A DNA stretch of 43,874 nt from Octopus bimaculoides (lineage: Eukaryota). Within the stretch, counting starts at the first letter, position 1; each line of letters opens with the position of its first letter. Under the pieces are notes generated by a model. It ran no database searches and had not been told where the DNA came from. It saw only the letters and a list, made by a program, of their open reading frames with translations. The position numbers were made by a program, and so were the translations under genes. The DNA lies in contig NC_068992.1 of NCBI RefSeq assembly GCF_001194135.2, forward strand, positions 27,415,127-27,459,000, in the 5' to 3' direction. Positions 3,852 to 43,394 of the stretch are shown piece after piece.

Positions 3852-6800
3852 CTATAACAAAGCGAAACATGATTTATTGCACAGACACAAAAATTCAAAT
3901 TAAGGAACAAATGTTACTCCTAATTAGTGGCAAAGTAGACAATTAAAACAGGGTTGTAGACTTGTATGATAAATTTACATAAAATGTTTAACTGTAATTA
4001 TATTAATAATATAAAATTATATTTTTAATGATTATTTATTATAAACTGAAATATCTTTCAATTTCTTAATTTTGAGGAATAATTTTATTCTATCAGTTCT
4101 TCAGAAATAGCAGTTTATAAATGGAAGTACATGACTTTCATGGCATAATTGTCTTGAAACTAAATACCAATATAGAAGTACTAATCACGTGTTGGAATTT
4201 CTGACACAAAATATTTTACATATAGTTGCTATGAATTATTATTATTATGCTCACTTCTGTGTAATTGGTGTGGTGTTGATGCCCTAAGTTAAATCCAATC
4301 ATGAAGGTATATAATTAAATAAGATTCCAACCATGACCACATCACTTTTTTTTTCTATTTTCCAGACATATTGTCAAAGACCACACTGTCCAAAGTGTCC
4401 TTCCCTTATTTTAAAAGCATTGTGTGATTCAAGAGAGATTTGGAAGTTAATCCTAGCAGGTCATATCCTACCATAGGTACAGATCTTAATGTGCGTCAAT
4501 GTATAACCTGAACATTATATATCAAGTTATACTGTCAGGCCAAATCTGAGGTCTTGAGTTAACTTACTTTTCTTCAACTTACAACAAAATAAGTAAACAG
4601 ATTTGGCATAAATTCTCAGAGAAATTAACTATCTTTCAGCAATATTTCCCAATCAAACTACCCTAGCATAGCATCAAAATTTTCCTAACACCATATTACA
4701 GATTCCTCAACATCTTTGATGATAGATTCCCAAATCTGCCTGTGTTGCATATATTAACCCATTACCTCCCATAATTCTATTAACTGGAATTTTTTTATGA
4801 AACTTTTGATTTCTAGCATAAAACAGCCTTAGAAACATGCTGGAATGATCAAAATAACATTTCAAAATAACATTTTAAATAGAAATAAGCGAGATATTGG
4901 GTGAAAAATTAGCAAACCTCATTTGAATATCAGAGAAATATACCTAGTAGATATAGCAAAAAGGTTAGATATGTGTAAATATTGACAGATAATTACAAAA
5001 TTTGTAATTTTTAAGTGATCTCACATGAGATCACTGGTAGGTAATGGGTTAACAATTGTTACTTGAGCTATTATTACAAATTAAAATATCACCCCAAGGT
5101 GTATTTTACAAAGTAAAATACAACCCAATTCACAACTGAACTAATACTACCACTGATCAACCATCATCATTCTATAATAAGGATCAAAAAGTTTACCTTC
5201 ATTCATTATGACTTGCATATACAAATCCAAAGAACTGATCAAAACAAGTTACCTCGACTAAAGTCCTTGAGTCAAAATCACTCTATACTTGTAAGAACAA
5301 TCAAACTGTTGCAAAATTAAGAAAAATTACCCTTCTTACTTTTTTGCGGGCTTGGAGGTTTTGCAGGTGAACAAGCAGCTTTTTCATCAGCTTTTCTGTC
5401 TCTACCTGGGCATGCACATATTCTAACTTCAACAGCCCGTCGCCCTAACACTTGATTACTGAAAAGTAAAAAAACAATTCAAAATACAGCTATTGAAATA
5501 TTTTCTTAAATACAGTTAAATATTTAAAAAATGATATTAGTCTTTAAATTGATATTTCTCTTCCAAATTCATTTACAACAGAAATTAATTACCTGTATTC
5601 GTTATGCAACTGTAATATACTATCAAGTACATTAAAGGTTTTATAAGTCCTACCATGTAAGCAGTGCTATTAAATCACTTTTTTAAGGTTATCTCTACAC
5701 TCATTACCTATTTTTCCATCCTCAACTGCATTGTTTAGATTAGATGCATTCAGTTATGAAACATCATAATAAATCAGTGCTGGCAATGATTTCTATAGAA
5801 AATCTATAGAGATAACCTTAAAAGAGAAAATTTCTTTTACAACAAATGCAAAATTGACAATTTTACTAAACTTATAAATGAAATCCATTTTTTACATAAA
5901 ACTATACTACGAAAGATAAACTTACTCTTTCTCCAGCGTAAATACTAGTTGCATAGGCCTTCTGTTTGGACCTCCAACACAAGAACCAAGACACATGAAC
6001 TGGTATAAGTTGATCACCCACTCAGAGCCCGCTAGGATAGGATGAAATAATACACATAACAAACTGTTCGGGATTTAAAGACAGTAATATTTAAAATAAA
6101 AGAAAGCTAGTTATAAGGTTTGTGTTCTAAATAAAACATTTACTATTTATCTCTTTGAATTTACTGGGAATTTTACTAGAAAATATCATGAAATAAATCA
6201 GATTTCTTACAAAAAGTATTTCAAACTTAACAAAATGTACAAGGTCCTTAATATTAACATAATCAATTACAAAACGAAAGTCAGGTTTTGAATTTTTGTA
6301 GAATAATATTCAAAAAATTAAAAACAGCAGTTACCTTGTGGCATTTCATGTGGTATTAACACACTTTGACGCCCATTATAAAGATCTTCTTCATACTTAG
6401 CTAACTTATGTTCACATCTGACAATGTGTACAGGGGCTGGATGATCTGTCATAATAGAATGTAAGTGTAAATGACTAACAAGCTGTTGATCAAAAGAGGC
6501 ACATATAATGAAATGATAGTTTTAAAGCAGTAGAAACATTTTAATTTCAGACAACTCAAAAATAAAAAGTTGTGTCTTTAAATGAAACTGCATAGAATAG
6601 AAAGATTTCATAGCTGTCAAGCAATAATCAAAATTAACCTGGAGATTCAATAAGATATGTAACTAAATTTGTTAGTCAATCACTAAAATCTTTTGTTATG
6701 CTTTTAATGCCATCCACCTGACACTACCACTAATTCTTTGATACAAAGTCAATAACTTAACAGAAACTTATATAAAATTACCATAATTTTACGTACAAAT

Positions 6801-9800
6801 CTGCCATGAAATTACCTTCCAAACTCCAGTTTAATATACTAATGAATAAAAAATTTTATTTTATTGGAGCCTTGCAAATTCTTTCTTATTTTCAAAATAA
6901 GAAACTTGTATTAGGCATATTGCCACAAAAGGGTTAACATTGATAGTTGCTCCATTCTATACCTAAGTTATTACGATGCTTGCTTAATCCCCAGTTGTTT
7001 AACCCTTTTGTTACCATATTTCTGCTGAAATACACAGTCTTTGCTTCAGCTAATTCTTAAACTAATGACGACTGTCAAAAGACTGTCATTTTTAAGTTAG
7101 TGTTTGGAACATCATCATCATTTAGCGTCCACTGAAATGAAATTTTGATGAAAGGTTTGAATTTTGATCACTTTAAAACACAAAGTTCTATCACAGAACT
7201 AGGGGCAGTCTCAGATGGGTTGGTATCAAAAAGGTTAATGAATACATACAGGGTGTTCAAGCTAAATTTGACAATTTTTTTTACTCTTTTTTCAGGAACA
7301 CCTAGATGTAGTGGTGAACAGTCAACAGCATTGGAGAGAATAAAGACCATAAAGTTGTAGTTAAGAAAAAATTAGCTGACATGGAGGACTAAAAACCATT
7401 GGAATATTGGAAAAGAGTTACCTGTATCATGAGGATTCATGCTGGGTATCAAAATGCCAACATCATGATTGCTACTCAATGCTCTGTGAACACTGTAAAA
7501 GCTGTAAGAAGCAACATGGACAGTTGCAGCAGAGACTACGAAGCCGTAGCCAGCAATAAGGGACACAGCAGACATTCTGATTGTTTTCACACACCAGAAT
7601 TCATCCAACCACTGCAGGACAAAGTGACACAAGATCCAAGCAAGGAAATCTGGGCTTTGGTGAGAGAGATGGGTGTTGAAGTTGCCATCATATAACTGAT
7701 TCTGAATGAGCACTTTCACTGCCACTCACACAAGAGGCACAAGAGACAAATTCAGGCAGCCCAGGTGAACTGTTTGATGGAGACGAAAGTTCCTGGACAA
7801 ACTGAGATATCCTGCTGAGCCAGGGATAATCTGGTTCTTCTCAAATGAAAAGAACTTGTCAGGACCAGTTGCACAACACCCCGGACAACAACTGGTTTGC
7901 CCACAATCCATGTAACGTCTTATGTATCATGAAAACCAAGTTCTCCCAAACTGTGATGGTCTTTGGGTGTGTATCCAGTGAGGATGATATCATGCCACCC
8001 CACATCTTTGAACAGGGCTTCAGGCCCAATTCAGATGGCTGTGTGAAGCTGCAAGAGACTGTGGCCGAACCATGGCTCAAGAAGAGCACTGCTGGAAGGT
8101 TATATGTGTGACAGCAGGATTTGGTTCCTTACTATACCCCCAGAAAAAGTCAGAAGTGCTTATCGGAGAATTTCTATGACTTCACCAGCCTTAATTTCTT
8201 GCCTTGTAATTTCCCTAATTGTAACCCTATGAATTACTGTGTGGGGCACAGTTGAGAAAGACACCAACCACTCTGCTTGCAACACCAAGACCAAGCTGAT
8301 GGCCAAGATCAAGGAAATGTACAAAGACCTTCCTGGAAACACAATGAGGGGCACATACACAAGGTTCTAGAGCCATCTTGAGGCCATAGTGGAAGCTGAA
8401 GGTGGCTACTTTGAATAAACTGTAATCTCCCAGTCATAATTTAGTTGAAGTTTTTGATTTTTTTAAAATAATTTTATTTTTGGGTGGGATATTGTTTTCT
8501 TTTCCTTTAATGCAAACTGTCAAATTTAGCCTGAACACCCTGTACCTTAAAAGTAAATACCAATTCCCAATAGCAATTATCCATATATAAAATAGGAGAC
8601 CTATTTTCTGCTAAGCAAAGTTAGCTTATAAAATAATGTACCTTGACAAGAGTTAAATTTCATAACATTTGAAACTGTGGTTCAATATATTCCACACTCA
8701 AATCAACAGATATTATAACGTAAATTGTGCTTACTTTCATTATGTTCCTTAGCAGTTGCATGGTTTGGACATCGCTTTACTACTTCTTGAACGTGTTCTG
8801 GTTTCATGAATATTGGCATTGCCCGAATCTGGCAACCAGATGGAGGCGTCTGTAATGTCTTAAATCGAACAGGACATGTGGTAGCCATTCTCACATACAA
8901 TTTGTCTAATTTTTCGGAATACTGTGAGAGAGAAATATATTTTAATATTAATTTCTATTTGCACAAATATATGCATGCACATATGTATATTAATGTGTAT
9001 AATTACAGAAAATACCTTACATTATTTTAAATCGTTTTGCAATTTTTACTTCAAATCTTGCTACATTGAAACTATCATTACAGGGTAGAAATATCTGCCT
9101 GCTCAACTTTCTCTTAATTACTTTTTAATGTTTTGATAGGGATTTATATATATTTTATCAGACATAAGCAGAATCTATAAACAAAGAGAATAATGTACAA
9201 AGTCATTTTAAAGACCTTTTTACATGTGAATGCCTTTGGAGATGTAGAAAAATAATGGATATGCTTAAGGCACATAATATTGTTATCAATCAGTATTACA
9301 ATCACAGAAATAGAACATTAAGCAAGAAATTTATTCAAGGAAAGTGATGATGTTTAGCTACTGCAGTATAAAAATAAACTTGATAATACCGTCTTTATAG
9401 GGGCACAATAATGTTGGTAGACATCAGAGGGTGACACAACACAACCTACTACAGCATTGTATACACCTTTACTCAACAAATGGCCAACACAGAAGGAAAC
9501 ATAGGAACCTTTACATGGTATCTCAACTTGCTAAAAATTGCAGCCAAATCTATGTCAAATCAAACACTACCATCTTAAAAATAAAAGGAAATACTTTGGA
9601 TAATGTTGTTCTAGATAAAAAGATAAAATAGTTGCAGCTAGAATGCCCTTCATTACCGATCTTCATCAGGGCTGTCCTGAAAATAACATCGAACACTATA
9701 CTAGTACTTGTTAGTCAATCACTAAAATCTTTTGTTATGCTTTTAATGCCATCCACCTGACACTACCACTAATTCTTTGATACAAAGTCAATAACTTAAC

Positions 9801-12800
9801 AAACTTATATAAAATTACCATAATTTTACATACAAATCTTCCATGAAATTACCTTCCAAACTCCAGTTTAATATACTAATGAATAAAAAATTTTATTTTA
9901 TTGGAGCCTTGCAAATTCTTTCTTATTTTCAAAATAAGAAACTTGTATTAGGCATATTGCCACAAAAGAGTTAACATTGATCGTTGCTCCATTCTATACC
10001 TTCGAATGAAACCCACATAATTATACAGCTAAAATGAGGGAACCTTAAGACACCTTGAACAAAAACAACATTAGTATCATTGGAAGGAGGCAATGTTGTC
10101 AGCAGTGTCCAACAGTGATACAGTGGAGACAGGCGATGGAGATGGAAGTGAAAATATTAATGATAAGATGTAAAGTGTTTTATATTCTGCAATCAGAACA
10201 TAAGTGTCTGACATAATTTATAGCAACAAAAATTGAATGAAGAGCTTTATTCAGTTATCTATAGATGTTTAGTCCTACTAAACAAACATTAAAAAGTAGT
10301 TCAAAGCTTAACAAATCAACATTTGAAGAACAATCTCTCCAGAAGTGTCAATGTTGGCTACCAGCCCAAAACAAGCTTAATCATTAGATTCTTCTGATGT
10401 TGTCAATCAATTTTTGATTACATTTTAAGAGGATTTATTCAACACTCATTCAAACAATATAATTTAGTGGTGATGTATAAGAGTATTGAACAAAGTTTCT
10501 GTAGATTGTCAAATTTTAAAAATGTGCATTGATTTTCATCCTGTTAGTTGGTTTTGGTTACAGGGATTTTAGCAAATTATAACATTAACAGTTGTTTTAT
10601 ATATATATATAAATATATATTATAATATTAGGGACAAAATCCAAAATTACAGGTAAAAACTCAATTAAAATCAATTTATAAAAAATTTAAATTAAATTGA
10701 GCTTTATAGATAAAATATATATAAAATATATAGTTTTAGGGAAAATAACCAAGTTTCAGGAACTCATCGATGAAAATCCACTATCACATATAGAAAAATT
10801 AATAATTAAAAGCACAATAAATGAGTATAATATAAAGTAAAGTAAATATCATAAGATAAATATTATATTTATCTTATGATATTTACTTTACTTTATATTA
10901 TACTCATTTATTGTGCTTTTAATTATTAATTTTTCTATATGTGATAGTAGATTTTCATCGATGAGTTCTTGAAACTTGGTTATATATNNNNNNNNNNATA
11001 TATATATATATATATATATAAACTAACAACATAACTTGGTATCTGTCAAGCAATAATTTCATTCCTGCTTCAAAACAGTGGTTAGCAGTAGTGAAAACAA
11101 TCCAACAATAAGACAACTGATGTAAGTAAAATATGTTGAATTCACAACACCTCGACAACTTCGTACAACATCCCAGTATATCTCAATTTGGATGAAAGTC
11201 ACAAGCAGATTCAAATCATTCACACATTTCCATATCAGTCAGCATCACTTAACATCTATGTTCCATGCTGGCATGGGTTGGATATATCACTTTATATTTT
11301 CATATTGCTTATAAAAAGAAAGAAAATTAATCCTTTTTCGTGCTATTACTTACTGTCCAAGTAGTTGATTTCGTTTCCTTTGAGGGTTGTGCAAATGATA
11401 TTTCGAAGTGGTAATCACCAGGGTAATTTGTACTGAAATTTTTTTGAAGAAGAAAAAAAATCTCAAAATATTTAACATTTTTTAAAAGCAGGTTTGATTT
11501 ATAGATTAAGCTATATTAATTTACTTCTCTATTATTTTATTGACTTTTCTTTAGTGTCTAGGGATCTGTGGCTGGATCTTTTGCAGTAAGACTGATGCAA
11601 GAACAAACTGAAGTGTTTTGGAAAAGAATTCGAGAAGGAGGAATGAGAAAATGGTTAGTGCAAGTCCTAGGAATAGCCAACTTTGGTCTGATTTTAACTC
11701 AGAGCATAAGGGTGAACAAATATCAAAAGATATTTTGCCCAATGCTCTAACAACTCTACTGATTCTTGCACTAGGATTTAGTTATTTTTACTTTACAAAA
11801 AAACACCATGCAGAAGATCATTGCTTAACGTCCGTTTTCTATGCTGGCATGGGTTGGACAGTTTGACTGGAGACTGGCAAGCCAGGAGGCTGCACCAGGC
11901 TCCAATCTGATTTGGCAGAGTTTCTACAGCTGGATGCCCTTCCTAACACCAACCACTCTGAGAGTGTAGTGGGTGCTTTTTACATGCTACCAGCACAGGA
12001 GCCAGTCAGGCAGCACTGGCATCGGCTATGTTTGAATGGTGCTTTTTACGTGCTACCAGCACAGGGGCCAGTTGGGGCAGGGGGCTGGCATTGACCACAT
12101 TTAGATCATGCATTTTACATGCCACCAGCACGGGGAGTCAGTCAGGTGGCACTGTCAATGATCCAGGCATGAATGGTGCTTATTGCGTGCCAGATATTAA
12201 ACAATATAAGAAAGAAAAGAGCAAGAGTGGGTATGTTTGCCCTTTTCAACCTCAAATTTGTAGTTATAATGTGTAGTGTAATTTACATCATCATCAGTGA
12301 ATTCATGACAGGTTGTAAAAGCTATTAGACACAAACATAATTGTGAAGAAATTCTCTCCACACTGGAAGTATGATGAACAATGTGACAATGATTGCAGTG
12401 TTTTCCAGTAGATGCTGGATGATATCAAGTACATCAAACAAAATTACACCAACATTATTGACCTATTGATATATAAATATAAACATCTAAGTATGTTACC
12501 CCATTTCTCCATTCCCCATTATATTGCTGAATTGTACATCATCATTATTAAATATTGATTTAACATTCACCTTTTCAATGCTTGTCTGGATTAAGGGCTC
12601 ACATAGCATATTTCCATATAATCCTAACAAATACCATCATTTATCAATATGATTTAATAAATTCCTTATTATATCCTACTATATTCTTTTGGATATTCAG
12701 AATACTCATTAATATTTAACAACAAAAGATAAAAAGAAAAACAATGATTGTATTATTTCAAAATCAATTTGTTATTACAAAGAAAAAACTTACAAAATAT

Positions 12801-18800: not shown

Positions 18801-20655
18801 CCATGCTGGCATAGGCTGGACGGTTTGATCAGGGCTAGTAAGCTGATGAGCTGCATCAGATTTCAGTCTGATTTAGCATGGTTCTATGGCTGGATGCCCT
18901 TCCTAATGCCAACCACTCCAAGAATGTAATGGGTGCTGTTACATGCCACCAGCATGGGTGCTAGTTGCTTGACACCAGTAACTGGCATAAATTATATATA
19001 AATACACACAATTAAGTATTGAGACAGAGTTTATGAATAAATTTTCATTTGCACATGTGTATTCAGCCTTGCAATGCAATTAAACTCCAGAACTAAACAA
19101 CAATTGGCAAATAGTATGGTAGAGCTAGTATTTACCTGAAAGTAAATATGTGAATAAGCACTTTTCCTTGTGATATTCTCTTTTAGTGTCAGGATAGAGT
19201 TATGCTTTTATTTTGGGGGATTCTATTGGGAATGTTTTATTCCCAATATTATTCCTTGTCTTTAGAATAATTTGTTATCTGAGTATCCTGGTGAAACCTT
19301 TTGCTTTCCTGTGTTGCTTGAATATAGTTTATAACCATATAAGAAGTTTTCTTGCTATTTGCCTTGCCAATTTCTATTTCAGTTTAGAAGTTAGATTGAT
19401 ATTGACGATAATCATGCATTGAATCTCTTGAACTAATTTAGGTAATGCACATACCAACTACCAATTTTTGTGGCTTTATTAGTTGTATTAAACAACAAAC
19501 AAATCGATTACATTTTCCAGCTACACAAAATGAGATCTGCCAGTAAATATTTAAAAAATTCAAACCCATAACTTACTTAGATGGAACTGTTGGTTTTGGA
19601 GATTGGATGCTGTCATGAGGATAGGGTGTGGATGAAACAGGCTGAAATGAAGTATTTTAGAAGAATTAAAAAATATTATACAATGATAAGTAGAGAACAA
19701 TATCTTTTTTCTTTAAACACTAAATAATTATTTCCTAATTTGATTTCGAATGACCATCATTATTAATTGCTACTGAGCTTCTATTTATGGCCTAATCAGA
19801 AAAGGAACAAAATGTCACCCACCATGCTTTGCAGCAACAGTGGGTTACTTTGCAGAAGAATTTCTACATTTAAAATTCTACTTTGCTAGGCAACTTTGAT
19901 GATCTTCCATAGATACTAATGATGGAATGTATCTAGCTTCTTGGCCATCTTTGCCTATATTCTTCCTGTCTCATTGCTATACAGAACTGTTAGCAGGAGC
20001 AGTGCACTATATAACCAAAGTTTTATGTTAATTCTGATGCATGTTATTCCCCAGTTTTGGCACTTACAATAGAATATAGACTCAACTTTGCCAATACTGC
20101 TGTTTACATCACTTTCTATACCTCCACAAGTGATCATACTGACCAAGTACAAGAAATTGTTCACAACTTCCGCAACAAGCTATCATAGCAGAGTTTTCCC
20201 CCAAGTCATTCTAGACCCTTCTATAATGTGGCTTAAGCTCAAACATCTAAAGGAAAAAGAAAGAGGAGCAAGATATAGAGAGATGCATGTGAAAAATAAA
20301 AGCCAAAAAGAAGACATCTCATGGCAATTAAAAATGCAGTCGTCAGGATTTAATGATATCAATCATTGTAACTGATTATCATTATAACTTAGTTTCTCAG
20401 ATATGTGTATTTAAACAACTAGAATTTTTAAACAATTTCATTTTGCATAAACATGCAAACTATGGAAGAAGAACTTTCAGTGTAACAGTTCATATATTAG
20501 AAAAGTGAAAATACTTACTACTTCATCATAATTACAGGTATTTCCAAGAACACTTGGCTGACAGTCATTTAAACCTAGCTGATTGTGTGACTGACCCATT
20601 ATGGGATTTAACTGAAAAATAGGGAGAGAAAATATATGTCAGTATCAGCAGCAGC

Positions 20656-26600: not shown

Positions 26601-27121
26601 CTACTTACCGGATAAGTTGTAAACCCCCTTCTTTCAACCTTGATCATTATAAATATATATACACACACACATATATATATGCAACAGATAAAATAGTTCC
26701 AGAATAAAACCCTACAAAATTAACTAGATTAAGAAGTTAAAATTCCAATTCTAGTGTTGTGGAGAAAAACATCTTAATAAATATAGTATATATTATAATG
26801 ACTAACAGTATGAAGAACAAGTTGTATCATGTTAAATAGCCACAAATAAAAAGAATATGCCTGAACTTGTTAGCTGGTCACTACGAATATGTTGGCTATA
26901 GCTACTAATGAGAGAAAAACAATACAAATGACAAAGTGAAATGTAAGAGAAAGTGACAAAATAAAGTTGACTGGCAGGACTTCATTCTTGGACAAACCAA
27001 AATATCAATAACAAATCAAGGCAATGAAAGAATCAACTCATAGAAAAGGTTATAAATTTACAAACAAAATAATTGACAGCGGTGACCTCTTTCATATCCA
27101 ACTTCAAATACTTAAATAATA

Positions 27122-27161
<40 letters not shown>

Positions 27162-27784
27162 CATATATACATAACCCATGCTAGCATGGAAAGCAGACGA
27201 TGATGATGATGATATATATATATATANNNNNNNNNNNNNNNNNNNNNNNNNNNNNNNNNNNNNNNNNNNNNNNNNNNNNNNNNNNNNNNNNNNNNNNNNN
27301 NNNNNNNNNNNNNNNNNNNNNNNNNNNNNNNNNNNNNNNNNNNNNNNNNNNNNNNNNNNNNNNNNNNNNNNNNNNNNNNNNNNNNNNNNNNNNNNNNNNN
27401 NNNNNNNNNNNNNNNNNNNNNNNNNNNNNNNNNNNNNNNNNNNNNNNNNNNNNNNNNNNNNNNNNNNNNNNNNNNNNNNNNNNNNNNNNNNNNNNNNNNN
27501 NNNNNNNNNNNNNNNNNNNNNNNNNNNNNNNNNNNNNNNNNNNNNNNNNNNNNNNNNNNNNNNNNNNNNNNNNNNNNNNNNNNNNNNNNNNNNNNNNNNN
27601 NNNNNNNNNNNNNNNNNNNNNNNNNNNNNNNNNNNNNNNNNNNNNNNNNNNNNNNNNNNNNNNNNNNNNNNNNNNNNNNNNNNNNNNNNNNNNNNNNNNN
27701 NNNNNNNNNNNNNNNNNNNNNNNNNNNNNNNNNNNNNNNNNNNNNNNNNNNNNNNNNNNNNNNNNNNNNNNNNNNNNNNNNNNN

Positions 27785-27830
<46 letters not shown>

Positions 27831-30800
27831 CCCACACACACATCAAATAACTTTATCAGATTTTAAAACAATTTATAAAAATGTATTATTAGTTCTTTTT
27901 AGAATTTCCAAAATGTTATTCGTCAGAAGATTATGTTGAATAAAAAGAATGTACTAAGACTGAGTTTAGAGAAAAAATACAATATTGGGAAAAGGTTCTG
28001 TTATATTGCACCAAATGATCACATAGCAGCAAACAATAGATAATGGACAAAACAATAAATAATAAATCAGTAATTAAAAATATATATGATAGCCTATAGA
28101 AAAAGGGGGGATATAGATCTTTCTTTATGGCTAACCAAACAGAGAACAATCCAACCTTTATTTTACCCAAACAGAGAACAATCCAACCTTTATTTTACCC
28201 AAACAGAGGTTTCTTTACTGCCAACAATAATCAATCAGGAAAACTAGACTGTTTTAATGAAAGACTTACTCAGAGATAATTAATTAATGTTATTGTGATA
28301 ATAATGATAATGTTAAAATAAATATAGAAAATAGGACTTATCTACATTAACTTCTTTAATTTAGCAACACATTCAGTTGGAAAATATTTTACACTAACAT
28401 TTTCATATTTTTTTTAAATACATTTTAAACTCTCATGTGTCTTTTGGTTAATCAGTGCAATGTAAGCTGAGATAGAACTCATAAGCTTACAGAAGGATTT
28501 CAACAATTTTAGCCACTACGCCATGGAGAAATAGTACAAATTGGCAACTTTGTCTATTGAAAGCATAATCAGAAAAACAGATAAAATCACATGCAAAAAT
28601 GGACCATTCAAAACTTACAAAGTCTGCTAAGGAAAGAAAACAAACTCACAAGACTGAAATGGTTGTTAAAAAAAATTGAAGGTGTTTGATCCAGTTAATA
28701 ACAAAGCCAAGTTAACATTTAAAAAGTGTAACACCAAAATTAATCAATTATTTAAAGCTAATCAATTTTTTAGTGATTAATGAAATGTTATTAAATGAAA
28801 ATTCAAACTGATCAAATAAAATTCATATTAAAATGTCAAATTAATATTTTTGTGACAAATTCTAAAACTTCATTGAAATTCTTTCTCTCACTCAGAACCT
28901 TAACAATTTTCCCTGGTCTTCCTGTCCAACTGCTCCCAGCTCCAACCAGATCTCCTTTCCTCTTCCCGGTCACATCACTAGGGAGTTCTTTGACCTTCCT
29001 CACTTGTACCCTAGGAGTTTTATCTGAGGATCTGCAAGGCAAAGTTGTGCTGGAGTCCCCTAAGGGCATGTGCATTCTAATGCCACTTATCCATTTGATC
29101 TCTACATCAATGGAGGTCTATTAAGTTTGCTCCCCAAAAAACTATGTTGCTGATTTCCAATGGATTCCAGGCAACTTCCAAATATCTCAACATGTTAGCC
29201 CCATACAATGGAACTGACTTCACACTTGAACTGCAGATCTTAGTGTCCCTGGGATGAGCCTCAACTTCCAAATATTATTCAGCAGAAGGAATGCACACTT
29301 TGCCAATATTGGCTTTAACATCAGTAATAGTATCACTTGTCTGGTTGATGATCCAACCCAGGCACATAAAGCTTGAATGAATATCCTACAAAGTTCTCCA
29401 TAAGGGAAAATGGTTAAGGAATCTCAGTGAAAACTGCAGTCTACCAAACTGTCTCAACCTCTTTGTTGTTCTTGACAGTATCAATTACATTATAAAGAAC
29501 ATCACAGCAGTCAGGAGAAGTGGAATTCAATGGTCTTGAATTCAAACAGCTTGAAACACCTTGTTTACACAGATGATCTTGTACTGTTGTCTCATAGTCT
29601 ATGCCAGATGCAGAAGACATCGTCTCTCAAATCATTGAAATTAGTTTTATTTAAAAGAAAAGAATAGTAGTTGCTGTAAACGTTGTAGCTTAACTATGAT
29701 CAAAGAAGTTCTAACCAAGAACATACTATCTTTCTTTTTTTTTCAGACAGTCTATAAAGAACATTATCAAATATGGTCTTCCTTCTTTAAGACAGCAATG
29801 TATGATTTGAGAGATTTGTCTGTTATTTTTAGAGACTGATCAGCAATATCTAAATTCACTCATCTGAAGACAGATATTTGTATATGAATTCATGTTTCAA
29901 TATTACATCACAAGGTGGCGAGCTGGCAGAATCATTAGCACACCGGGCCTAGTGACAGTTTGTCTGTCAGCACATTCTGAGTTCAAATTCTGCCGATGAT
30001 GACTTTGCCTTTCATCCTTTTGGGGGTCGATAAAATAAGTACGAGTAGAGCACTGGGATTGATGTAACCAGCTTAACCCCTTCCCAAAGTTGCTAGCCTT
30101 GTGCCAAAATTTGAAACCAATATTATATTACAACACTTATTTCCATCTCCACTTATCCAGTCTATCTTCTCATTTTCAAATATCTGGGAACATAACACTC
30201 ATAGGAAAAATAAATCACAATAAAATAACAAACATACAAAGAAATAAGTCCATTTATCTAAACTATTGTCTGATTTTGCTTCAAGTTTTTTAATTCATTA
30301 ACAAACTTTCAACCTAGACAAAATGCTATATACATATTTATGTATTCAAACACCTCAAAAGTGAACATGGCCAAGATTTAGGTACTAATTAGTAAGAGAC
30401 CTAAACAGCAGTAGTTTTGTAGTCTTGGAAGTATAAAAGGAACTCAATACAGAAACACAAAAAAAAATGAAATCAGATCTCTGATAGTATATTAGAGACT
30501 CAATGCCTTAGGTGCTGTCAATTCATTGATGTAGTTAGCAAATTTGATGCTGTTTTGAATGAAGACATAATTAAGGCAGATCACTTTCCAACTAGAAGCA
30601 AGTTACTAATTAACAAAAATTAAAAATCATTAAAAAAAAGGAATGTTAATATTTCTGAGCTAATCCTAAAGAGGGCTAGAAAAAGTTCCAGGAATATTAA
30701 CCAAGTTAAAAATGAAGTATTCTTTCTATGAAACCATGTTATGAAATTGAGTAAAAAAAAATAACCAGATATCCAAAAGGATTGCTCAAGGTACGCAGGA

Positions 30801-36800: not shown

Positions 36801-37585
36801 TACAACTGATGACAAAAGATAATAGCTACAATTAGTGCTCAGGTTGACTTCCTGGTAAACTACTTGAGCTGCAACTAAAAATGCAGGGATGTTATAGCTG
36901 CCTGATAAAGATTGACTCTGTCCATTATCTGATACCAGTTGTGTGCCTGTTGCCTGTTTGTATGTATGTGGGTGGCAGCTGATGAAGGATATGTTCTCTA
37001 TGTAGCCTGCTTGTTTGTTGTACCTTGTTTATCATTTTGTCCATGTTCTTTTGCAACGTCATGTACTCAGATAGGTATCTATATGTACATGTAGATGAAG
37101 GTATCTACATACATGTACATATATNNNNNNNNNNNNNNNNNNNNNNNNNNNNNNNNNNNNNNNNNNNNNNNNNNNNNNNNNNNNNNNNNNNNNNNNNNNN
37201 NNNNNNNNNNNNNNNNNNNNNNNNNNNNNNNNNNNNNNNNNNNNNNNNNNNNNNNNNNNNNNNNNNNNNNNNNNNNNNNNNNNNNNNNNNNNNNNNNNNN
37301 NNNNNNNNNNNNNNNNNNNNNNNNNNNNNNNNNNNNNNNNNNNNNNNNNNNNNNNNNNNNNNNNNNNNNNNNNNNNNNNNNNNNNNNNNNNNNNNNNNNN
37401 NNNNNNNNNNNNNNNNNNNNNNNNNNNNNNNNNNNNNNNNNNNNNNNNNNNNNNNNNNNNNNNNNNNNNNNNNNNNNNNNNNNNNNNNNNNNNNNNNNNN
37501 NNNNNNNNNNNNNNNNNNNNNNNNNNNNNNNNNNNNNNNNNNNNNNNNNNNNNNNNNNNNNNNNNNNNNNNNNNNNNNNNNNNNN

Positions 37586-37627
<42 letters not shown>

Positions 37628-40600
37628 CATACACACAGACACACACACACATTTCACTAACCCACATAAAAATACATCTAAAAGTTTGTCATTATCCAAA
37701 TGAACTTACCAACTGAGCTAAGCTTGATGATCCTGTGACAAGCTAGAAGAATGATAAAAGAAAGTTCAACTTAGAATTACATAAATTAAACAACTAAAAC
37801 AACAGCTAATTGACCTTTCAGAAGACTGATTCAGTATAATTATACTAATTAATTCACAACATACCATTGATAAGCCTTTCCTTCAAGTCAATTAGAACTC
37901 ATATACATATATAAAGCTACAAACGTCTTATAAACAATATCAAGGAAAATAAAATTGTTTTATATTTTTGTTAATATATGAAAAACACTAACATTCTAGG
38001 TTGGTGAAATATATACCAAACCGACATTTATATTTGACTAAATGGTGGGTAACAAACAAAAACAGGTAATAAAATAATTGTTCAAACAAATTACATCATC
38101 TTCAGAGAGTAAAAAAATATTTTAAAACATTCTTTACAATATTTGGCCAGGTGGTTGTTTGTCTATTGTATTTAACTCTTCACCTACTACCCCTTTATTA
38201 CTCTCCCAATTATCAATTGCCTTCTTTCCTATTCACTGTACCATGACCCCAATATAACAAAGAATGGCACCAAACATGTCTATATTAATTCCCACGCAAC
38301 CATCACCTTTCATCACTCTACCACTGACCATGTCACAAGATGGCTTACTATCATCTCTCTCTCTCTCCTTTAATGATACCTACCACACTCTTCTACTATT
38401 ACTCATTTTACTGCGAACATTAAATGATTATGATGATGATTTACGTTACTAATTCATGTTTATTTTACAGATGTACAAGAGTAGAAAATGGGTAGAGAAG
38501 ACAGTCAATTATGTCATCCCCAATACTCAATTGGTTCTTACTTTATCAAACCCAGAAGGATGAAAGGTGAAGTCAACCACAGCAGGAATTTGAACTAAGA
38601 ATGTAAAGGGCATAACTAACCACCACAAAGCTTTGTGTCTGATATGCTAATGATTTTGTTAATCCAATGCTTCAAGGTATCAAGATCTTATAATCACATT
38701 TCTTCTACTTTCCAGATGAAAGGATTGTAGCTATATAAGGAATCTGTATTAGAAATGACATCCAGCTGTTCCATTTTAGAATAAAAAAAAGAAATTCTTA
38801 CCAAATCTGTTAAGCTATCATTCCTCACAGGATATTCATCATTTGAGCCAATCCTGAATGATTGAATTTCAAGAGAAGTTTGTTCAGGCTCATTTTCCCT
38901 AAATTCGTATGCAATTCCTCTTTCATGAATTTGTGCATATTCACTAAAAATGAAAAAAAAATATGGCATTAATAATTTTTTTTTTTAATCCATTTCAAGT
39001 GAACCCAGTCTTTTTTATAGGGGTCAAAGTCAACTTGTAAAAATGTAAAAAAAAATCTTACCTAAATATTATCTTTGCATTTCCCATTCAATTAGCAAAC
39101 TTTACATTGACAATTTTTTAGGAAAGGTAATTTTGAACAAGAGACTGCCTTGTGCCAGAACACTTTTCTCAATTTATTGGAAAACAAAAGCTAACCAATT
39201 CATATAATGCTGGGAGAGGGCTCTCATATGACACACAGACAGAGAGATATATCTGGAACAGTGATGGACCTAATTTAAGATGGCTACTGAATACAAATTT
39301 TTACGTACATCACATCTATAGAATGTGATGTACGTGATCACATCATAAGTGAAGGTACAGGAACCAAAGGTTGAGGTAAGGATCTGGATCTCTGGAACCA
39401 TTTTCTTTCAACTTGCCAGTGCTGGTGCCATGTAAAAAGCACCCAGTCCACTCTCTAAAGTGGTTGATGTTAGGAAGGGAATCTACCCATAAAATCCATG
39501 CCAAATCAGATCTCACCAATGATGGGGTCATATAAAAAGCACTCAGTCCACTCTGTGAAATGGCTGGTGCTAGAAAGGGCACCCAACTATGAACATCATA
39601 CCAAAGTAGACAGAGGAGCTTGGCCAAGTCCTCTAGCTCGTCAGCTCGCATGGAAGAGATGATGATAAATGGTCAAAATCCTTATGATTTTTCTTTCCTA
39701 ATCATCCACATATAAAACTAATAGGAAAAATGTGGATACAAGAGTGATATTCTTATTTGTGTTGGGGTTTTAAAGTCAATTTGAAGCATTAAAAATTTGT
39801 CCAACACAATGGTGAACACAGCAGAATTATATGGATGCAAACTCTATTTCACCTTCTCATGAATAAACAGAGCGGAGTGGGGACCAAAATCTTCTCCTGA
39901 TATATCAGTGTAGGTTGATTGGGAGAATGGAGACTATTGCTAATGCATTCAATTTTTCTGTGGAATGTATTCTGAAAGGCAGAGGAGAGGGTGGTATAAA
40001 AAGGTAAAATTTTTGAAGGAAAAAATTCTCTGGAGCTTCACTTGTTATTTCTAGCATGTCAAGCAAGCTGTTGAAACAGCAGATGAAATGAGGCTGCCCT
40101 TACTTCATCTGCTGGTTCAAGAGGCATCCATGCACACATGGTAAGTATTGTTATACCAACAACCTGGTATGGGACCAGTTTGAAAAACTGAAATTTTGAG
40201 AAGAAATTTTTTTCAGAACTCTGGCATGTCACATGACCATATTGAGACCTTCCTCATTTTATCTGCTGTTAAAAGCAGCAGTTATGCATACAGAAATGAG
40301 TGGCTGAGTTTAAAACTAGAATGTTAATATGTCAGTTGAGATGGTTATTCCAAACAGCTGAGAGCTTAAGTGATGGATTTTGAAAAAATTGAAATTCTTT
40401 AAATATTTTTTTTTTCCTGAATTATTTACTTTTCCACATGAAATTTTCCAAATTTTTTTAAAGACTAAAGAAAAAAAATTTTGGAGTTGTGTGAAATTTT
40501 GAGAGCGTAAAATCATTTATCACCATTATCAAAAACACAATTCCAAAGAAATTTTTAAAAAAGAAAAAAGAGGGAGGAATGTATTCAACAGATCTACACT

Positions 40601-43394
40601 GAATTTCTTCATCTTTTCAATTGTTTATACTTACTTATTACCAATACAGACCATCACTACTTTATTTGGATCCTACTGTGCATGTATATGTGTATACATT
40701 TAAATAGCCTTAACTATGTTGTGTGCCCAGCCTCCAATTTGACCACTTTTTGCTCCATAAGTTTTCTCCTTTCTACAACACAATCTTTGAGGCAGTTTTC
40801 ATTATTAGATTCCTCACTCAGATATTTCAGTAAAGCTTAACTATAAGGTATCAGTGTTACTCCCTCTCCAATTTGACTACAATTTTGATGTGGCTTACAG
40901 AATTAGATTCTTCTCATTGAGATCTTTTACTGAAGTGCAACTAAAACAAAAATAACAGAAATAAGGAAACTATACTACTTCCGAAGTTGCACCAGTGTTA
41001 CACAATTTTTGAATACACATTTATTGCAACTTTTTTTTCCTCGAACCAATTTTCTATTACAATATTTCAAAATGTAGAGGAGTTCGAGTCTTTTCAGTAA
41101 ACTGACCTGCATTTAATTTGGTCAAGAACTGAATTAGTTAAATGGCATAGGCCATGAATGCTATTCACCCACTGCCATTGGTGAATGATAAAACCAAGCT
41201 ATTGACATCTTTGAATCTGTACTAGCAACACCTAACAGGATTTGTATGATGATTTTGACAGCTTGGTGTAGAGTATGAGGACAGAATGGGCAGTCTTTTG
41301 GCATTCTGGAATCATAAAAGGGTTAAAAACCTCAGATTTAGAAGTATCTCTACAGAGGTAGTAAAATGTGCTGGAGTTAATCACATAATTACACAGCTGA
41401 GATATCTCCACAGACAAGAACAATTTATTACAGATTTTGTAGTATGGGCTATTTTAAATGTATACTGCAAGAATGAATGAAGCAGTAAAATATACAATGG
41501 TCCCATTACTTAGAGTAGTAAACATCATCATTTCTACATCTATGTTGACACGAGTTGGATGAAACTGTTCTACAGCAAATCTTTACTTCCTCAAAGTATT
41601 TTATTCCCCATCATCACATGTCAAACTGCTGAGTTACCAGGCTTCTATATTTAGGCAAGACATAAAGAATGTCATTACTGCCCATGTCGTGTCAATGCAA
41701 GAACATGTAGGGATATGCACACATATGCATATACACACGACTGGTTTTCTTACCAAATTTTATCAACAAGGCATTATTCAACCCAAAGTTATAGCAGAAA
41801 ACATTTGCCCTAGGTGTCTCAGAGAAGAATCAGATCTAAAAGTATGTAATTGAAAAGCAAACTTCTGAACCACAAAGTTATCCCCTGTGCCATTGAGTAT
41901 ATTTACAAATAAATTGACTTAATTGATATCCAGCAATAGAAACTATATCAAAAATGCTATGTATATGTGAAATGTGATCCTTGACCCATTTAAGAAGGTA
42001 GAAATTCCAAGATCGGACTTGGGCCATAACAACCTCTTCAACCAATGGAAAAGTAGATGTAAAATGATGAATGGAAATAAGTAGCTTTGTTAGAGATAAA
42101 GCAAAACATCAAATGACATTACAAGCAGGGATGTTGGAATCAGAGTCTTGAAACAATTACTGGGTTGCTTGTTGTCTACATAAAAATGTAGACTCCAACA
42201 AAATACAAATAGTAATATAAAGCATTAAATTTCTTATTTCACAAATACTAATTTGATTATTTTCTGTACTGGAAATCATCAAACTAGATTTAAGGGATTC
42301 TATGAAAGAGGGTCTGGTAGAAGCAATTCTGTTTCTGAGAATAAGATACTAGTAAATTACAGATTTTTTTTTTCTGTAATAAAATTTTTAGAGATAAGCT
42401 TTGTAATCTTTTAAAACATAAATTTTATTTACTTTAATGTAATCTTTTATTCATTTAAGTTATATATTCAAACTAACCACAAAAAGCATGGTTATGTACC
42501 AAAGTTTCTTTCTTTTCAAATGTTCATTGTTTTAGTTTTAACTTTGATGCATTTTAGAATCTCACCTGGTAAACAAAGATGCTTTAGAAGTATCTCTACA
42601 GAGGTAATGATAGATGCTTCTGATAAGACCCTATAGAGAAGAATTCTACCCTCATGACCATTCCAGGTAAAGCAAGCAGAGAAGATGGTGGATGGAAACA
42701 AAGATGTCCTTGATATTTTTTTATGGAATACTTATAGTTTATTCCTTTTATAGTCTTATTTTAAATCTAAGTTTTGTGTTATACTCACTTATTTAACATC
42801 AAAAGAAAATAAATTGGTATAGCTCTATCCCATTTTAGCATGCCTCCAGGTTAGAGTGCTAAAAAGTATTTTGATGAGTCGTATTAGTTAGCCAATATAG
42901 GTTACATGCATTTAATAACTATAAGAAATATATATGTCTAATAACAAATAGAGGAGCCAGAGATGAAACTGAAGGTTTGTGCATGAAACAAGCTTCACCA
43001 AAGGCAGGACATCCCAAACAACACACACCTAAGTCTAATACACTAAACATTAGACCTGAAAATCAAGTGCTAAGAGATTAAATCTAACTTTACTAGCTTC
43101 GATTCAGTGGAGAATGGGGACTAATACTTTTAGAGCAGTTAACAAAAATAGAGATCCAAGAATAAATAACACAAATATTCACATGCAAAGATATTACAAT
43201 CAATCTAATCAGAAATAACAAAAAGATATGAATGCATTAAAATCATTAAATCTACAAATATGCTAATAGACATCAAATATAATTTGAAGAACTTAAATTT
43301 TAACTTACTTCTGTGAAATATGTTCCAGATTATTCCAAATAGTATCAAATTCCTGCGAAGCCCTCTGATTAGATGACATTCCTTGAGAGGCCAT
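3757..43394 (-). CDS. TP63: p53/p63/p73-family transcription factor, TA isoform, 3'-partial: join(43394-43309, 38943-38802, 20611-20519, 19641-19577, 11432-11354, 8921-8735, 6445-6335, 6031-5926, 5458-5340 or 5331, 3851-3757)
   Basis: Ten exons with canonical AG/GT ends whose phases (2,0,0,2,0,1,1,2,1,0) join into one stop-free frame. It contains the FxxIWxxL TA motif, the full p53 DNA-binding domain ([33 protein letters not shown]) and the PKKRK NLS. Closely resembles squid p53/p63 as I recall it. The symbol is approximate because invertebrates usually have one p53/p63/p73 gene. Confidence 0.96.
4758..5048. mobile_element. piggyBac-type MITE
   Basis: TTAA on both sides (4754-4757, 5049-5052); TIR CCCATTACCT / AGGTAATGGG. 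Confidence 0.75.
5331..5458 (-). CDS. TP63: Exon 9: [39 protein letters not shown](SKK), end of DNA-binding domain; two in-frame donors (exon ends at 5340 or 5331)
   Basis: Acceptor tttacttttcag|; p53 box V motif [12 protein letters not shown]; donors A|GTAAGA and G|GTAATT are 9 nt apart, both phase 1. Confidence 0.95.
5926..6031 (-). CDS. TP63: Exon 8: [35 protein letters not shown]3 loop with Zn ligands and R248 equivalent
   Basis: Acceptor catcctatcctag|, donor GA|GTAAGT, 106 nt, phase 1-2. Confidence 0.97.
6335..6445 (-). CDS. TP63: Exon 7: [36 protein letters not shown]
   Basis: Acceptor attatgacag|, donor AAG|GTAACT, 111 nt, phase 1-1. Confidence 0.96.
6669..6964 (+). repeat. ~295-bp direct repeat, copy 1 (copy 2 at 9708-10001)
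   Basis: About 98% identical by eye (4 substitutions, one 2-nt indel). Confidence 0.95.
7003..7234. mobile_element. Degenerate piggyBac-type MITE
   Basis: TTAA-CCCTTTTGTTACC ... GGTATCAAAAAGG-TTAA; related to the copy at 32052. Confidence 0.65.
7249..8542 (+). mobile_element. Full-length decayed Tc1/mariner-superfamily transposon, DD37D (maT) type, transposase pseudogene
   Basis: TA TSD both sides; 25-bp TIR CAGGGTGTTCAAGCTAAATTTGACA / TGTCAAATTTAGCCTGAACACCCTG; ORF pieces 7399-7695 and 7845-8111 followed by *QQD-x37-N(D)Y. Confidence 0.9.
8735..8921 (-). CDS. TP63: Exon 6: [21 protein letters not shown]...[17 protein letters not shown], Zn ligands equivalent to C176/H179
   Basis: Overlaps ORF 8703-8900; acceptor ctctctcacag|, donor A|GTAAGC, 187 nt, phase 0-1. 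Confidence 0.97.
9708..10001 (+). repeat. ~295-bp direct repeat, copy 2
   Basis: Near-identical to 6669-6964. Confidence 0.95.
10745..10983. repeat. 239-bp near-perfect palindrome (119-bp arms, 2 mismatches)
   Basis: ATAACCAAGTTTCAGGAACTCATCGATG...CATCGATGAGTTCTTGAAACTTGGTTAT, centred on 10864. Confidence 0.95.
11354..11432 (-). CDS. TP63: Exon 5: [26 protein letters not shown], start of DNA-binding domain (L1 loop)
   Basis: Acceptor aaatttcag|, donor ACA|GTAAGT, 79 nt; YPG...KSTTWT is the p53 box II equivalent. Confidence 0.96.
11817..12190 (-). mobile_element. RTE-type 3' tail fragment with internal tandem sub-repeats
   Basis: Reverse complement of the family at 1-186; GGTGCTTTTTACATGC-like unit repeated. 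Confidence 0.7.
14650..15136. mobile_element. Head-to-head inverted pair of tRNA-headed retroposons with Penelope-like tails
   Basis: Centre GCCATATGCCC|GGGCATATGGC (14883/14884); each arm has A box TGGCGTAGTGG and a B-box-like sequence, then CCTGATGAAGG...AACGTTGTGTTAACAACAAACAAGATGAGGA. Confidence 0.75.
16216..16315 (-). mobile_element. RTE-type 3' tail fragment
   Basis: CATCATCATCATCGTCATCATTTAATGCCCGTTTTCCATGCTGGCATGGGTTGG. Confidence 0.65.
16600..17620. mobile_element. Highly decayed RTE LINE remnants: RT core on + before the gap at ~17070, post-RT region on - after it
   Basis: [11 protein letters not shown] resembles ELLYADDL; the minus-strand piece [10 protein letters not shown]...EGACGRER resembles LRWYGHV...GRGRP. 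Confidence 0.45.
17429..17482. repeat. 27-bp tandem duplication
   Basis: CTATTTAGGTCAAGTACACAACAGAAG x2. Confidence 0.95.
18266..18644 (-). mobile_element. Full-length tRNA-derived SINE with (CAA)n tail and 12-bp TSD
   Basis: Head GTGGAGGCGCAATGGCCCAGTGGTTAGGGCAGCGGACTCGCGGTTTCGAATTCCC; TSD GAGACATTATGT at 18254-18265 and 18645-18656. Confidence 0.9.
18759..18988 (-). mobile_element. RTE-type 3' tail fragment with (CAT)n
   Basis: Same family as 1-186, opposite orientation. Confidence 0.7.
19577..19641 (-). CDS. TP63: Exon 4: [21 protein letters not shown](N), proline-rich linker
   Basis: Acceptor cttcatttcag|, donor AA|GTAAGT, 65 nt, phase 0-2; completes the conserved VPSNTxYPG with the next exon. 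Confidence 0.93.
19930..20240 (-). mobile_element. Decayed RTE LINE RT fragment
   Basis: ORF 19955-20164: [22 protein letters not shown]...[20 protein letters not shown] resembles FxYLGS...DINxRIGK...KLRLYxxxVxSVLLYGSET. Confidence 0.7.
20519..20611 (-). CDS. TP63: Common exon 3: [31 protein letters not shown]
   Basis: Acceptor ccctatttttcag|, donor GTA|GTAAGT, 93 nt, phase 0-0; begins LNPI like the squid protein (recalled). Confidence 0.88.
22125..22400 (+). mobile_element. RTE-type 3' tail fragment with duplicated terminal AATGCCAGCATGGAAAGCA
   Basis: Same family as 1-186. Confidence 0.7.
24190..24345 (-). mobile_element. tRNA-derived SINE, family A
   Basis: On minus: TGTGTGGTTAAGATGTTTGCTTCCCAACCA...GGGTTCAGTCCCACTGCGTGGTACCTTGGGCAAGTGTC. 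Confidence 0.75.
26609..26647 (-). CDS. TP63: Alternative first exon of a DeltaN isoform: [13 protein letters not shown]
   Basis: ATG with A at -3 and an in-frame upstream TAA (26720-26722); 13 codons; strong phase-0 donor CCG|GTAAGT compatible with the exon at 20611; near match to the mussel DeltaNp63 N-terminus MIKFERTGFTTYR (recalled). Confidence 0.85.
26815..26872. promoter_or_regulatory. Putative p53/p63 response-element cluster upstream of the DeltaN exon
   Basis: Two zero-spacer pairs of RRRCWWGYYY-like decamers: GAACAAGTTG+TATCATGTTA (26815-26834) and GAATATGCCT+GAACTTGTTA (26853-26872). Confidence 0.45.
27120..27830. repeat. (TA)n microsatellites and RTE tail remnant around a ~557-N gap
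   Basis: Visible directly. Confidence 0.9.
28135..28208. repeat. 32-bp tandem repeat, 2.3 copies
   Basis: CCAAACAGAGAACAATCCAACCTTTATTTTAC repeated exactly. Confidence 0.95.
28881..29631 (-). mobile_element. 5'-truncated, 5'-inverted RTE LINE insertion with 11-bp TSD
   Basis: RT core ([10 protein letters not shown]) on + at ~29460-29625; downstream region (SFMCLG...DVKANIGK ... TPR...) on - at ~29455-28890; TCATTGAAATT at 28870-28880 and 29632-29642. Confidence 0.75.
29913..30120 (+). mobile_element. tRNA-derived SINE with Nin/Deu-like central domain
   Basis: GGCGAGCTGGCAGAATC...GAGTTCAAATTC, then GACTTTGCCTTTCATCCTTTTGGGGGTCGATAAAATAAGTAC; possible TSD TATTACA(T/A)CAC. Confidence 0.8.
32052..32256. 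mobile_element. piggyBac-type MITE
   Basis: TTAA TSD; perfect 12-bp TIR CCCTTTCGTTAC / GTAACGAAAGGG. Confidence 0.85.
32261..32472 (-). mobile_element. Nin/Deu-like SINE, degenerate
   Basis: Reverse complement of the 29913 family. Confidence 0.7.
35104..35475 (-). mobile_element. Adjacent SINE fragments: Nin/Deu-like (about 35104-35265) and family A (about 35325-35475)
   Basis: Family motifs shared with other copies in the window. Confidence 0.65.
35730..35880 (-). mobile_element. Degenerate tRNA-derived SINE, family A
   Basis: GACACCTGCCCAAGGTACCACGC motif. Confidence 0.55.
38505..38675 (-). mobile_element. Degenerate Nin/Deu-like SINE
   Basis: CCCAGAAGGATGAAAGGTGAAGTCAACC...GGAATTTGAACT. 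Confidence 0.6.
38802..38943 (-). CDS. TP63: TA coding exon 2: [47 protein letters not shown]
   Basis: Inside ORF 38694-38969; acceptor ttcatttttag|, donor TTG|GTAAGA; 142 nt = 1 + 47 codons; resembles squid EYTQIHERGVGYE...QTSLEI (recalled). Confidence 0.92.
39405..39666 (+). mobile_element. RTE-type 3' tail fragment with internal duplication
   Basis: AAAAAGCACCCAGTCCACTCTC unit occurs twice; ends GCATGGAAGAGATGATGAT. Confidence 0.6.
41745..41880 (-). mobile_element. Degenerate tRNA-derived SINE, family A
   Basis: AAAACATTTGCCCTAGGTG...AAAAGCAAACTTCTGAACCACA. Confidence 0.5.
43309..43394 (-). CDS. TP63: TA coding exon 1: [28 protein letters not shown](N), transactivation/MDM2-binding helix
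   Basis: ATG at 43394; SQ motif and F-x-x-I-W-x-x-L; donor AA|GTAAGT (phase 2) matches the next exon; upstream acceptor ttataatag| with the exon starting at 43428 implies an earlier exon outside the window. Confidence 0.9.

Follow-up and report, generated by a model that had tools for sequence, protein, structure and literature searches.

A putative DeltaN-type alternative first coding exon in the p63-like gene of Octopus bimaculoides

Organization of the p63-like Locus

The stretch of Octopus bimaculoides DNA analysed here (below called the window; 43,874 nucleotides) is occupied by one gene of the p53/p63 family, encoded on the minus strand. Its exons were mapped by tblastn with related proteins together with reading of the splice sites. 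In the direction of transcription, the coding part of TA exon 1 (43309..43394, minus strand, as are all the exons given here) is followed by TA exon 2 (38802..38943), which ends in a phase-0 donor, by a 33-nt microexon of phase 0/0 (37710..37742), and by a 39-nt open reading frame (26609..26647) that is the candidate DeltaN first coding exon. Next comes exon 3 (20519..20611), the common acceptor exon for the TA and the DeltaN 5′ ends. Going along the gene, the two TA exons are thus met at 43.4 and 38.9 kb, and the microexon (37.7 kb) and the DeltaN exon (26.6 kb) come before exon 3 at 20.6 kb. Exon 4 (19577..19641), identified by tblastn and its splice sites, encodes the linker preceding the DNA-binding domain. 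Five exons (11432-11354, 8921-8735, 6445-6335, 6031-5926, and 5458-5340) encode the P53 DNA-binding domain, and two more (3851-3757 and 2920-2814) encode the nuclear localization signal and the tetramerisation region; these seven were assigned by tblastn, splice sites and the Pfam matches given below.

AG/GT boundaries are found at every internal exon of the gene model, and both the TA and the DeltaN spliced models are in frame without stops, the latter being open across 10 exons. Pfam finds the P53 DNA-binding domain (PF00870, E = 5e-64) and the P53_tetramer motif (PF07710, E = 5e-15) in both models, and the gene thus carries the two domains that define membership of the p53/p63/p73 family. 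The closest protein is the ‘tumor protein 63-like isoform X1’ of another octopod, Argonauta hians, which displays 87% identity and contains SAM domains. The SAM-domain exons of the Octopus gene fall beyond the end of the window.

The original prediction placed the DeltaN exon in an 18-kb intron after TA exon 2. The exon does lie within this interval of about 18 kb, between the TA exons and the common exon 3, from which it is separated by around 6 kb. The same interval, however, also contains the conserved coding microexon at 37742..37710, so that the DeltaN candidate lies between the microexon and exon 3 rather than in one uninterrupted intron. The microexon has clean AG/GT sites in the window, and its 30-nt homolog in Argonauta (locus L001, 11951-11980, plus strand) encodes LVPGSSFAQL, residues that the deposited protein (P0070) contains. 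At this point the TA proteins of other molluscs and of annelids that were compared have no insert, and judged from these sequences the microexon looks octopod-specific.

TA exon 1 aligns to residues 1-28 of the Argonauta protein P0070 and encodes an FxxxWxxL motif (EFDTIWNNL) of the transactivation/MDM2-binding type. This motif is confined to TA exon 1 and is absent from the DeltaN form. The DeltaN model therefore comprises the DNA-binding and oligomerisation domains and no transactivation/MDM2-binding motif. The Pfam transactivation domain P53_TAD is not detected at E ≤ 1 even in the TA model, despite the FxxxWxxL spacing being kept. For several other mollusc TA proteins, a P53_TAD match is on record.

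Sequence, Frame and Splice Signals of the DeltaN Exon

The 39 coding nucleotides read ATGATCAAGGTTGAAAGAAGGGGGTTTACAACTTATCCG on the minus strand (26647..26609), that is, an ATG and 12 further codons, and they are directly followed by a GTAAGT splice donor of phase 0 (26608..26603). The base at position -3 relative to the ATG is an A (26650). The nearest in-frame stop upstream, a TAA at 26722..26720, is 24 codons away from the DeltaN start, and the codons between the two include no further ATG. The original prediction had described the exon at 26609-26647 with an A at -3, an in-frame upstream stop and a consensus phase-0 donor, and reading of the sequence bears out both the coordinates and the description. 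An out-of-frame ATG is found at 26672..26670 (minus strand), and would start a 12-codon uORF overlapping the DeltaN start if the 5′UTR reaches 26672.

The acceptor of exon 3 at 20611 (...ctatttttcag followed by TTAAATCCC) precedes an exon that is open in one frame only. Since only this frame is open, the acceptor at 20611 is of phase 0 and matches the phase of the donor at 26608. Joining the two in a model made from the DNA leads in frame into the common exon, which begins with LNPI, and the spliced model stays open into all downstream exons. The compatibility of donor and acceptor that had been proposed is thus confirmed at the sequence level.

Short ORFs that end at donor-like sites arise by chance, and an ATG...GTAAGT arrangement in an AT-rich intron could be such a case. 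The 18.2-kb interval contains seven GTRAGT sites, and an in-frame ATG is found at one of them. Taken alone, the combination of ATG and donor is weak evidence and is not significant; the match of the encoded peptide to known proteins, described below, is by contrast decisive against chance.

Conservation of the Peptide among Molluscs

When the spliced 336-aa DeltaN model was used as the homology query, several annotated mollusc proteins were covered from residue 1. Five such proteins open with a peptide homologous to that of the window exon and then continue directly into LNPI, or into LNSL in Nucella. In the Lottia gigantea protein named ‘DeltaNp63alpha’ the N-terminus is MIKVERTGFTTYR followed by LNPILGQ, and in the ‘tumor protein 63-like isoform X2’ of Gigantopelta aegis the same peptide is followed by LNPIVAQ. 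The Pomacea canaliculata protein begins with MMIKVERTGFTTYR followed by LNPIIPH; it contains the Lottia peptide and begins one Met earlier. The ‘cellular tumor antigen p53-like isoform X3’ of Mytilus californianus begins with MIKFERTGFTTYR followed by LNPIIAQ, and the Nucella lapillus protein with MLKLERTSMTTFR followed by LNSLVPH. The peptide of the window exon is identical to the form shared by Lottia, Gigantopelta, and Pomacea at 11 of the 13 positions, and to the Mytilus form at 10 of 13. A DeltaN N-terminus had been given for Mytilus in the original prediction; this peptide corresponds exactly to that of M. californianus isoform X3, and the 10/13 identity stands.

The 13 codons from the ATG thus encode a peptide of this family, with a score far above that of shuffled sequence. 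When the six-frame translation of the whole window was compared with MIKVERTGFTTYR, the best 13-mer was the DeltaN exon itself (11/13), and the runner-up reached 6/13. The best score in 100 shuffled windows was 7/13.

The TA-type proteins of the same and of other molluscs have ...(S/T)DL at the corresponding point, followed by LNPI. Lottia TAp63gamma and DeltaNp63alpha are the same from LNPILGQ across the DNA-binding and tetramerisation regions, and differ again only in their C-terminal tails. This shared sequence identifies LNPILGQ as the junction where alternative 5′ ends are joined onto one common exon. The octopod model agrees with molluscan DeltaNp63 in the 13-residue peptide, in the junction into the LNPI exon and in the loss of the transactivation region. 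It differs in having R7 and P13 where the other molluscan DeltaNp63 proteins have T7 and R13, and its host is a cephalopod. The interval where it is found also contains the octopod microexon.

Two proteins that are probably from annelids also lack the TA motif. In P0083 (Dimorphilus) the sequence ..RTFIFTNRK is followed by LNPII, and in P0105 MANSGNSNTQSYVFTGRK is followed by LNAM. These N-termini faintly resemble the ..GFTTYR preceding LNPI, which is a hint, seen in the sequences, that a DeltaN-type exon may occur outside Mollusca.

The Orthologous Exon in Argonauta hians

In the Argonauta hians locus L001 the gene is found on the plus strand, with TA exons at 10.0 and 10.6 kb, the microexon at 11951..11980, and exon 3 at 28844 (28844-28936). 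A DeltaN ortholog (27783-27821) precedes exon 3 by 1.0 kb; it reads ATGATGATCAAAGTTGAAAGAATGGGCTTTGCATCGTTTATG followed by GTAAGT and encodes (M)MIKVERMGFASFM. The order of the exons is the same as in the window. Lack of a conserved peptide at this intron position in other molluscs was among the signs that the original prediction had listed against itself; in Argonauta, the one species whose locus was compared, the ATG, the 13 codons and the GTAAGT are present there. Together with the peptide and the LNPI junction shared by the mollusc homologs, this intact ortholog strongly supports the reading of the exon as the first coding exon of a TA-less DeltaN isoform.

The Argonauta and the window exons are identical at 30 of the 39 coding nucleotides and over the whole GGTAAGTA donor, and their flanks are unalignable. 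The blastn comparison of the two intervals gives collinear single-copy matches for TA exon 2 (74% nucleotide identity between the window exon and L001 10590-10770), the microexon, the DeltaN exon, exon 3, and a non-coding block of 62 bp. Further short and weak matches exist, and some of these are TA repeats or have multiple hits; one is collinear (window at about 33.9 kb, L001 at about 18.1 kb). The C-terminal half of the Argonauta peptide has diverged (GFASFM vs GFTTYP), and the differences between the octopods are mostly non-synonymous. This suggests that the constraint on the last residues of the DeltaN peptide may be weak in octopods. Despite the peptide divergence, the ATG, the frame and the donor are intact in both octopods.

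These data also bear on whether the exon could be a relic, descended from an ancestral molluscan DeltaN exon whose transcription or splicing has been lost in octopods. The Argonauta copy does carry several non-synonymous changes, and the searched databases gave no DeltaN protein from a cephalopod. However, both octopods retain the ATG, an uninterrupted frame and a perfect GTAAGT within an intron that can otherwise no longer be aligned, and the window copy would probably not have kept 11/13 identity to the pan-molluscan consensus if it were unconstrained. A relic is thus regarded as very unlikely. An origin of the ORF by chance is less likely still, to the point of being negligible: the 11/13 match stands against a maximum of 7/13 in shuffled windows, the position and the splice phase are right, and the exon is conserved in Argonauta. 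On the strength of the consensus match and the Argonauta ortholog, a chance ORF was for practical purposes rejected.

The Upstream Region and the Nature of the 5′ End

A TA/TG microsatellite (26648..26712, minus strand) lies directly 5′ of the DeltaN ATG and is probably part of the 5′UTR or of a core promoter. A tract of the same kind precedes the ATG in Argonauta. Farther upstream is the conserved non-coding block (window 26906..26848, L001 27079..27138), which is collinear and displays 84% identity over 62 bp. Its core, GCTAACAAGTTCAGGCATAT, is a perfect match of 20 nt (26855..26874). In the window this core precedes the ATG by 208-227 bp, and each of the two loci contains it only once. In Argonauta the block is found about 650 bp upstream of the ATG; the spacing between block and ATG is filled by TA/TG microsatellites whose lengths differ between the two octopods. 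If a promoter or 5′UTR element is present here, this conserved block is the strongest candidate.

Other signals were searched for in the window. A scan for p53 response elements gave none, and there is no GC island. Rfam gives just sub-threshold matches of the microsatellite-miRNA type in a TA/TG repeat at about 27.1 kb, and none for the conserved block. An assembly gap of 558 N (27227..27784), separated from the DeltaN ATG by 580 bp on its upstream side, removes part of any promoter region from the assembly.

By sequence reading, there is no AG acceptor within the 65 nt 5′ of the ATG. This, together with the in-frame stop upstream, fits a first coding exon better than a cassette exon. An internal cassette exon was rejected on the same two grounds, the missing nearby acceptor and the upstream stop.

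A related alternative is that the exon is a real coding exon that is not the first one of its transcript: a non-coding leader could be placed farther upstream, or the exon could be reached by occasional splicing from the TA promoter, with no promoter just upstream of 26647. The 558 bp of unassembled sequence leaves room for such a leader beyond the gap, the conserved block might be a separate element or itself a leader and not a core promoter, and no GC island or recognisable promoter signal marks the region. On the other hand, the nearest 65 nt offer no acceptor, the homologs in four other molluscs begin at this very Met and that of Pomacea one Met earlier, the vertebrate analog is known to be a true first exon, and the upstream stop excludes a coding read-in from the TA exons. 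We consider this arrangement unlikely, although less so than a relic.

Very probably, the 39-nt ORF at 26647..26609 and the alternative first coding exon of molluscan DeltaNp63 (p63/p73-like) are orthologous, with the octopod exon served by an internal promoter and spliced to the acceptor at 20611.

The Proposed DeltaN Product

According to the model, transcription would start from an internal, intronic promoter upstream of 26647, for which the conserved block at 26906..26848 is a candidate element. The DeltaN exon would provide the start codon and 13 residues, and its phase-0 GTAAGT donor would be spliced to the phase-0 acceptor at 20611. The predicted product would lack the 75-86 N-terminal residues of the TA forms, including the FxxxWxxL motif, and would retain the DNA-binding and tetramerisation domains as well as the SAM domain, which is encoded outside the window. 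By analogy with vertebrate DeltaNp63 and DeltaNp73, such a protein could occupy the same response elements as the TA forms, form mixed tetramers with them, and modulate or oppose their activity. A dominant-negative action is at present speculative, and so is the relevance to arm regeneration, stem cells, or senescence that had been suggested in the original prediction.

Comparison with Vertebrate p53-family Isoforms

The vertebrate TP63 and TP73 genes make TA-less DeltaN isoforms from a second promoter situated in an intron (P2, exon 3′), where a true first exon of 13-14 codons is used, and these isoforms can act in a dominant-negative way. The layout in Octopus is the same, with a short first exon in the intron after the TA exons that is joined to a common exon before the DNA-binding domain. 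The junctions differ in detail, the vertebrate DeltaN junction being offset by a few residues from the LLN(P/S) motif. The vertebrate DeltaN N-termini include MLYLENNAQ..SE followed by PQYTNLGLLNSM. Homology to the vertebrate exon 3′ peptides (MLYLENNAQTQFSE and MLYVGDPARHLAT) was not detected by BLASTP, where the alignment begins at residue 35. Only the linker and the first part of the DNA-binding domain align with the vertebrate DeltaN proteins in BLASTP, and the isoform-specific peptides do not.

An ancient origin of the switch would mean that the DeltaN exon and the conserved block before it belong to an internal promoter that has been kept across Mollusca, including the cephalopods, and is homologous to the vertebrate P2/exon 3′ unit, so that the TA/DeltaN switch predates the split between protostomes and deuterostomes. 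The conservation in four mollusc classes or lineages and the vertebrate-like architecture are in favor of this, and the mutually dissimilar peptides are not; such a shared ancestry is a possibility that we regard as doubtful. If true, the two-promoter switch arose once in the p63/p73 ancestor, and not twice. Lamprey is reported to be without a DeltaNp63 equivalent (PMC4743058).

The vertebrate Delta133p53/Delta113p53 isoforms, which are made from a promoter in intron 4 of TP53, are another parallel. They are likewise N-terminally truncated, are transcribed from an intronic promoter, and modulate the full-length protein. However, they start inside the DNA-binding domain and lack a coding exon that is both specific to the isoform and conserved. 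Their expression is driven by p53 response elements, and the region of the octopod exon has no such element.

Annotation Status and Implications

The deposited Argonauta annotation does not contain a DeltaN product. When four predicted Argonauta DeltaN proteins and one Argonauta TA protein without the microexon were looked up by exact match, none was present in the protein collection. A DeltaN isoform is included among the NCBI-sourced entries for Mytilus californianus and Gigantopelta, and the Lottia TPA records carry the names DeltaNp63alpha and TAp63gamma. An exhaustive profile search for the DeltaN N-terminus among 1.84 billion representatives yielded no additional N-termini of the DeltaN type, cephalopod transcripts included; its matches were TA-type proteins and intron-readthrough ORFs only.

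In Mytilus, a DeltaN form of the p63/p73-like gene of molluscs has been in the literature since 2007 (Muttray et al., as cited in PMC10564563), and the molluscan p63 gene structure is treated by Baricevic et al. (2015; pmid 25936268, as cited in PMC5499142). No open paper was found on p63 isoforms in octopus or other cephalopods, and literal searches for the peptides in papers gave nothing relevant. The DeltaN form is thus already known for molluscs; what is new is the putative cephalopod member, identified here from genomic sequence. Nor does the exon represent a new kind of biology, the mechanism being the known TA/DeltaN alternative-promoter scheme.

For annotation, the exon supplies the 5′ end of a TA-less p63-like octopod isoform that is missing from at least the deposited Argonauta annotation. 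From an evolutionary point of view, the DeltaN start exon has now been seen in bivalves, in several gastropod lineages, and in octopods, and this distribution indicates that the 13 specific residues are under long-term constraint. By analogy with the DeltaN-specific residues of vertebrate p63, they probably have a specific role. The exon further offers targets for isoform-specific probes, primers, and knock-outs in work on the cephalopod p53 family, be it on development, regeneration, germ-line surveillance or ageing.

Other Features of the Locus

A few further details were seen in the window. The last exon of the DNA-binding domain ends in two alternative phase-1 donors (5331-5340, minus strand), ..CAAAAAA followed by GTAAGA and ..AAGAAGG followed by GTAATT. 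The Argonauta protein, which reads ..SPQK followed by NGF, indicates that the first of these is used. A tandem donor, GAA-GTA-GTAAGT, is found at the 3′ end of exon 3 (20513-20524, minus strand), and both options are of phase 0. In Argonauta the sequence ..NYEE followed by PVSS shows that the upstream GT is used and that the Val is dropped; the window exon could give either ..NYDE or ..NYDEV before PVSS.

Besides the gap upstream of the DeltaN exon (27227-27784), the assembly has gaps at 37125-37585 and 2696-2795 and four runs of 10-11 N. These gaps comprise 1160 N in total and are mostly flanked by TA/TG microsatellites. Transposon-derived ORFs were noted by eye in the introns and in the downstream sequence, at 255-635 and at about 7400-8400, both on the plus strand. 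One of the transposon-derived ORFs appears by eye to be the C-terminal region of a LINE-type element (..RRLRWYGYVVRM..GRGRPRKTWDKVV..), and another, likewise by eye, the remnant of a mariner/Tc1-like transposase.
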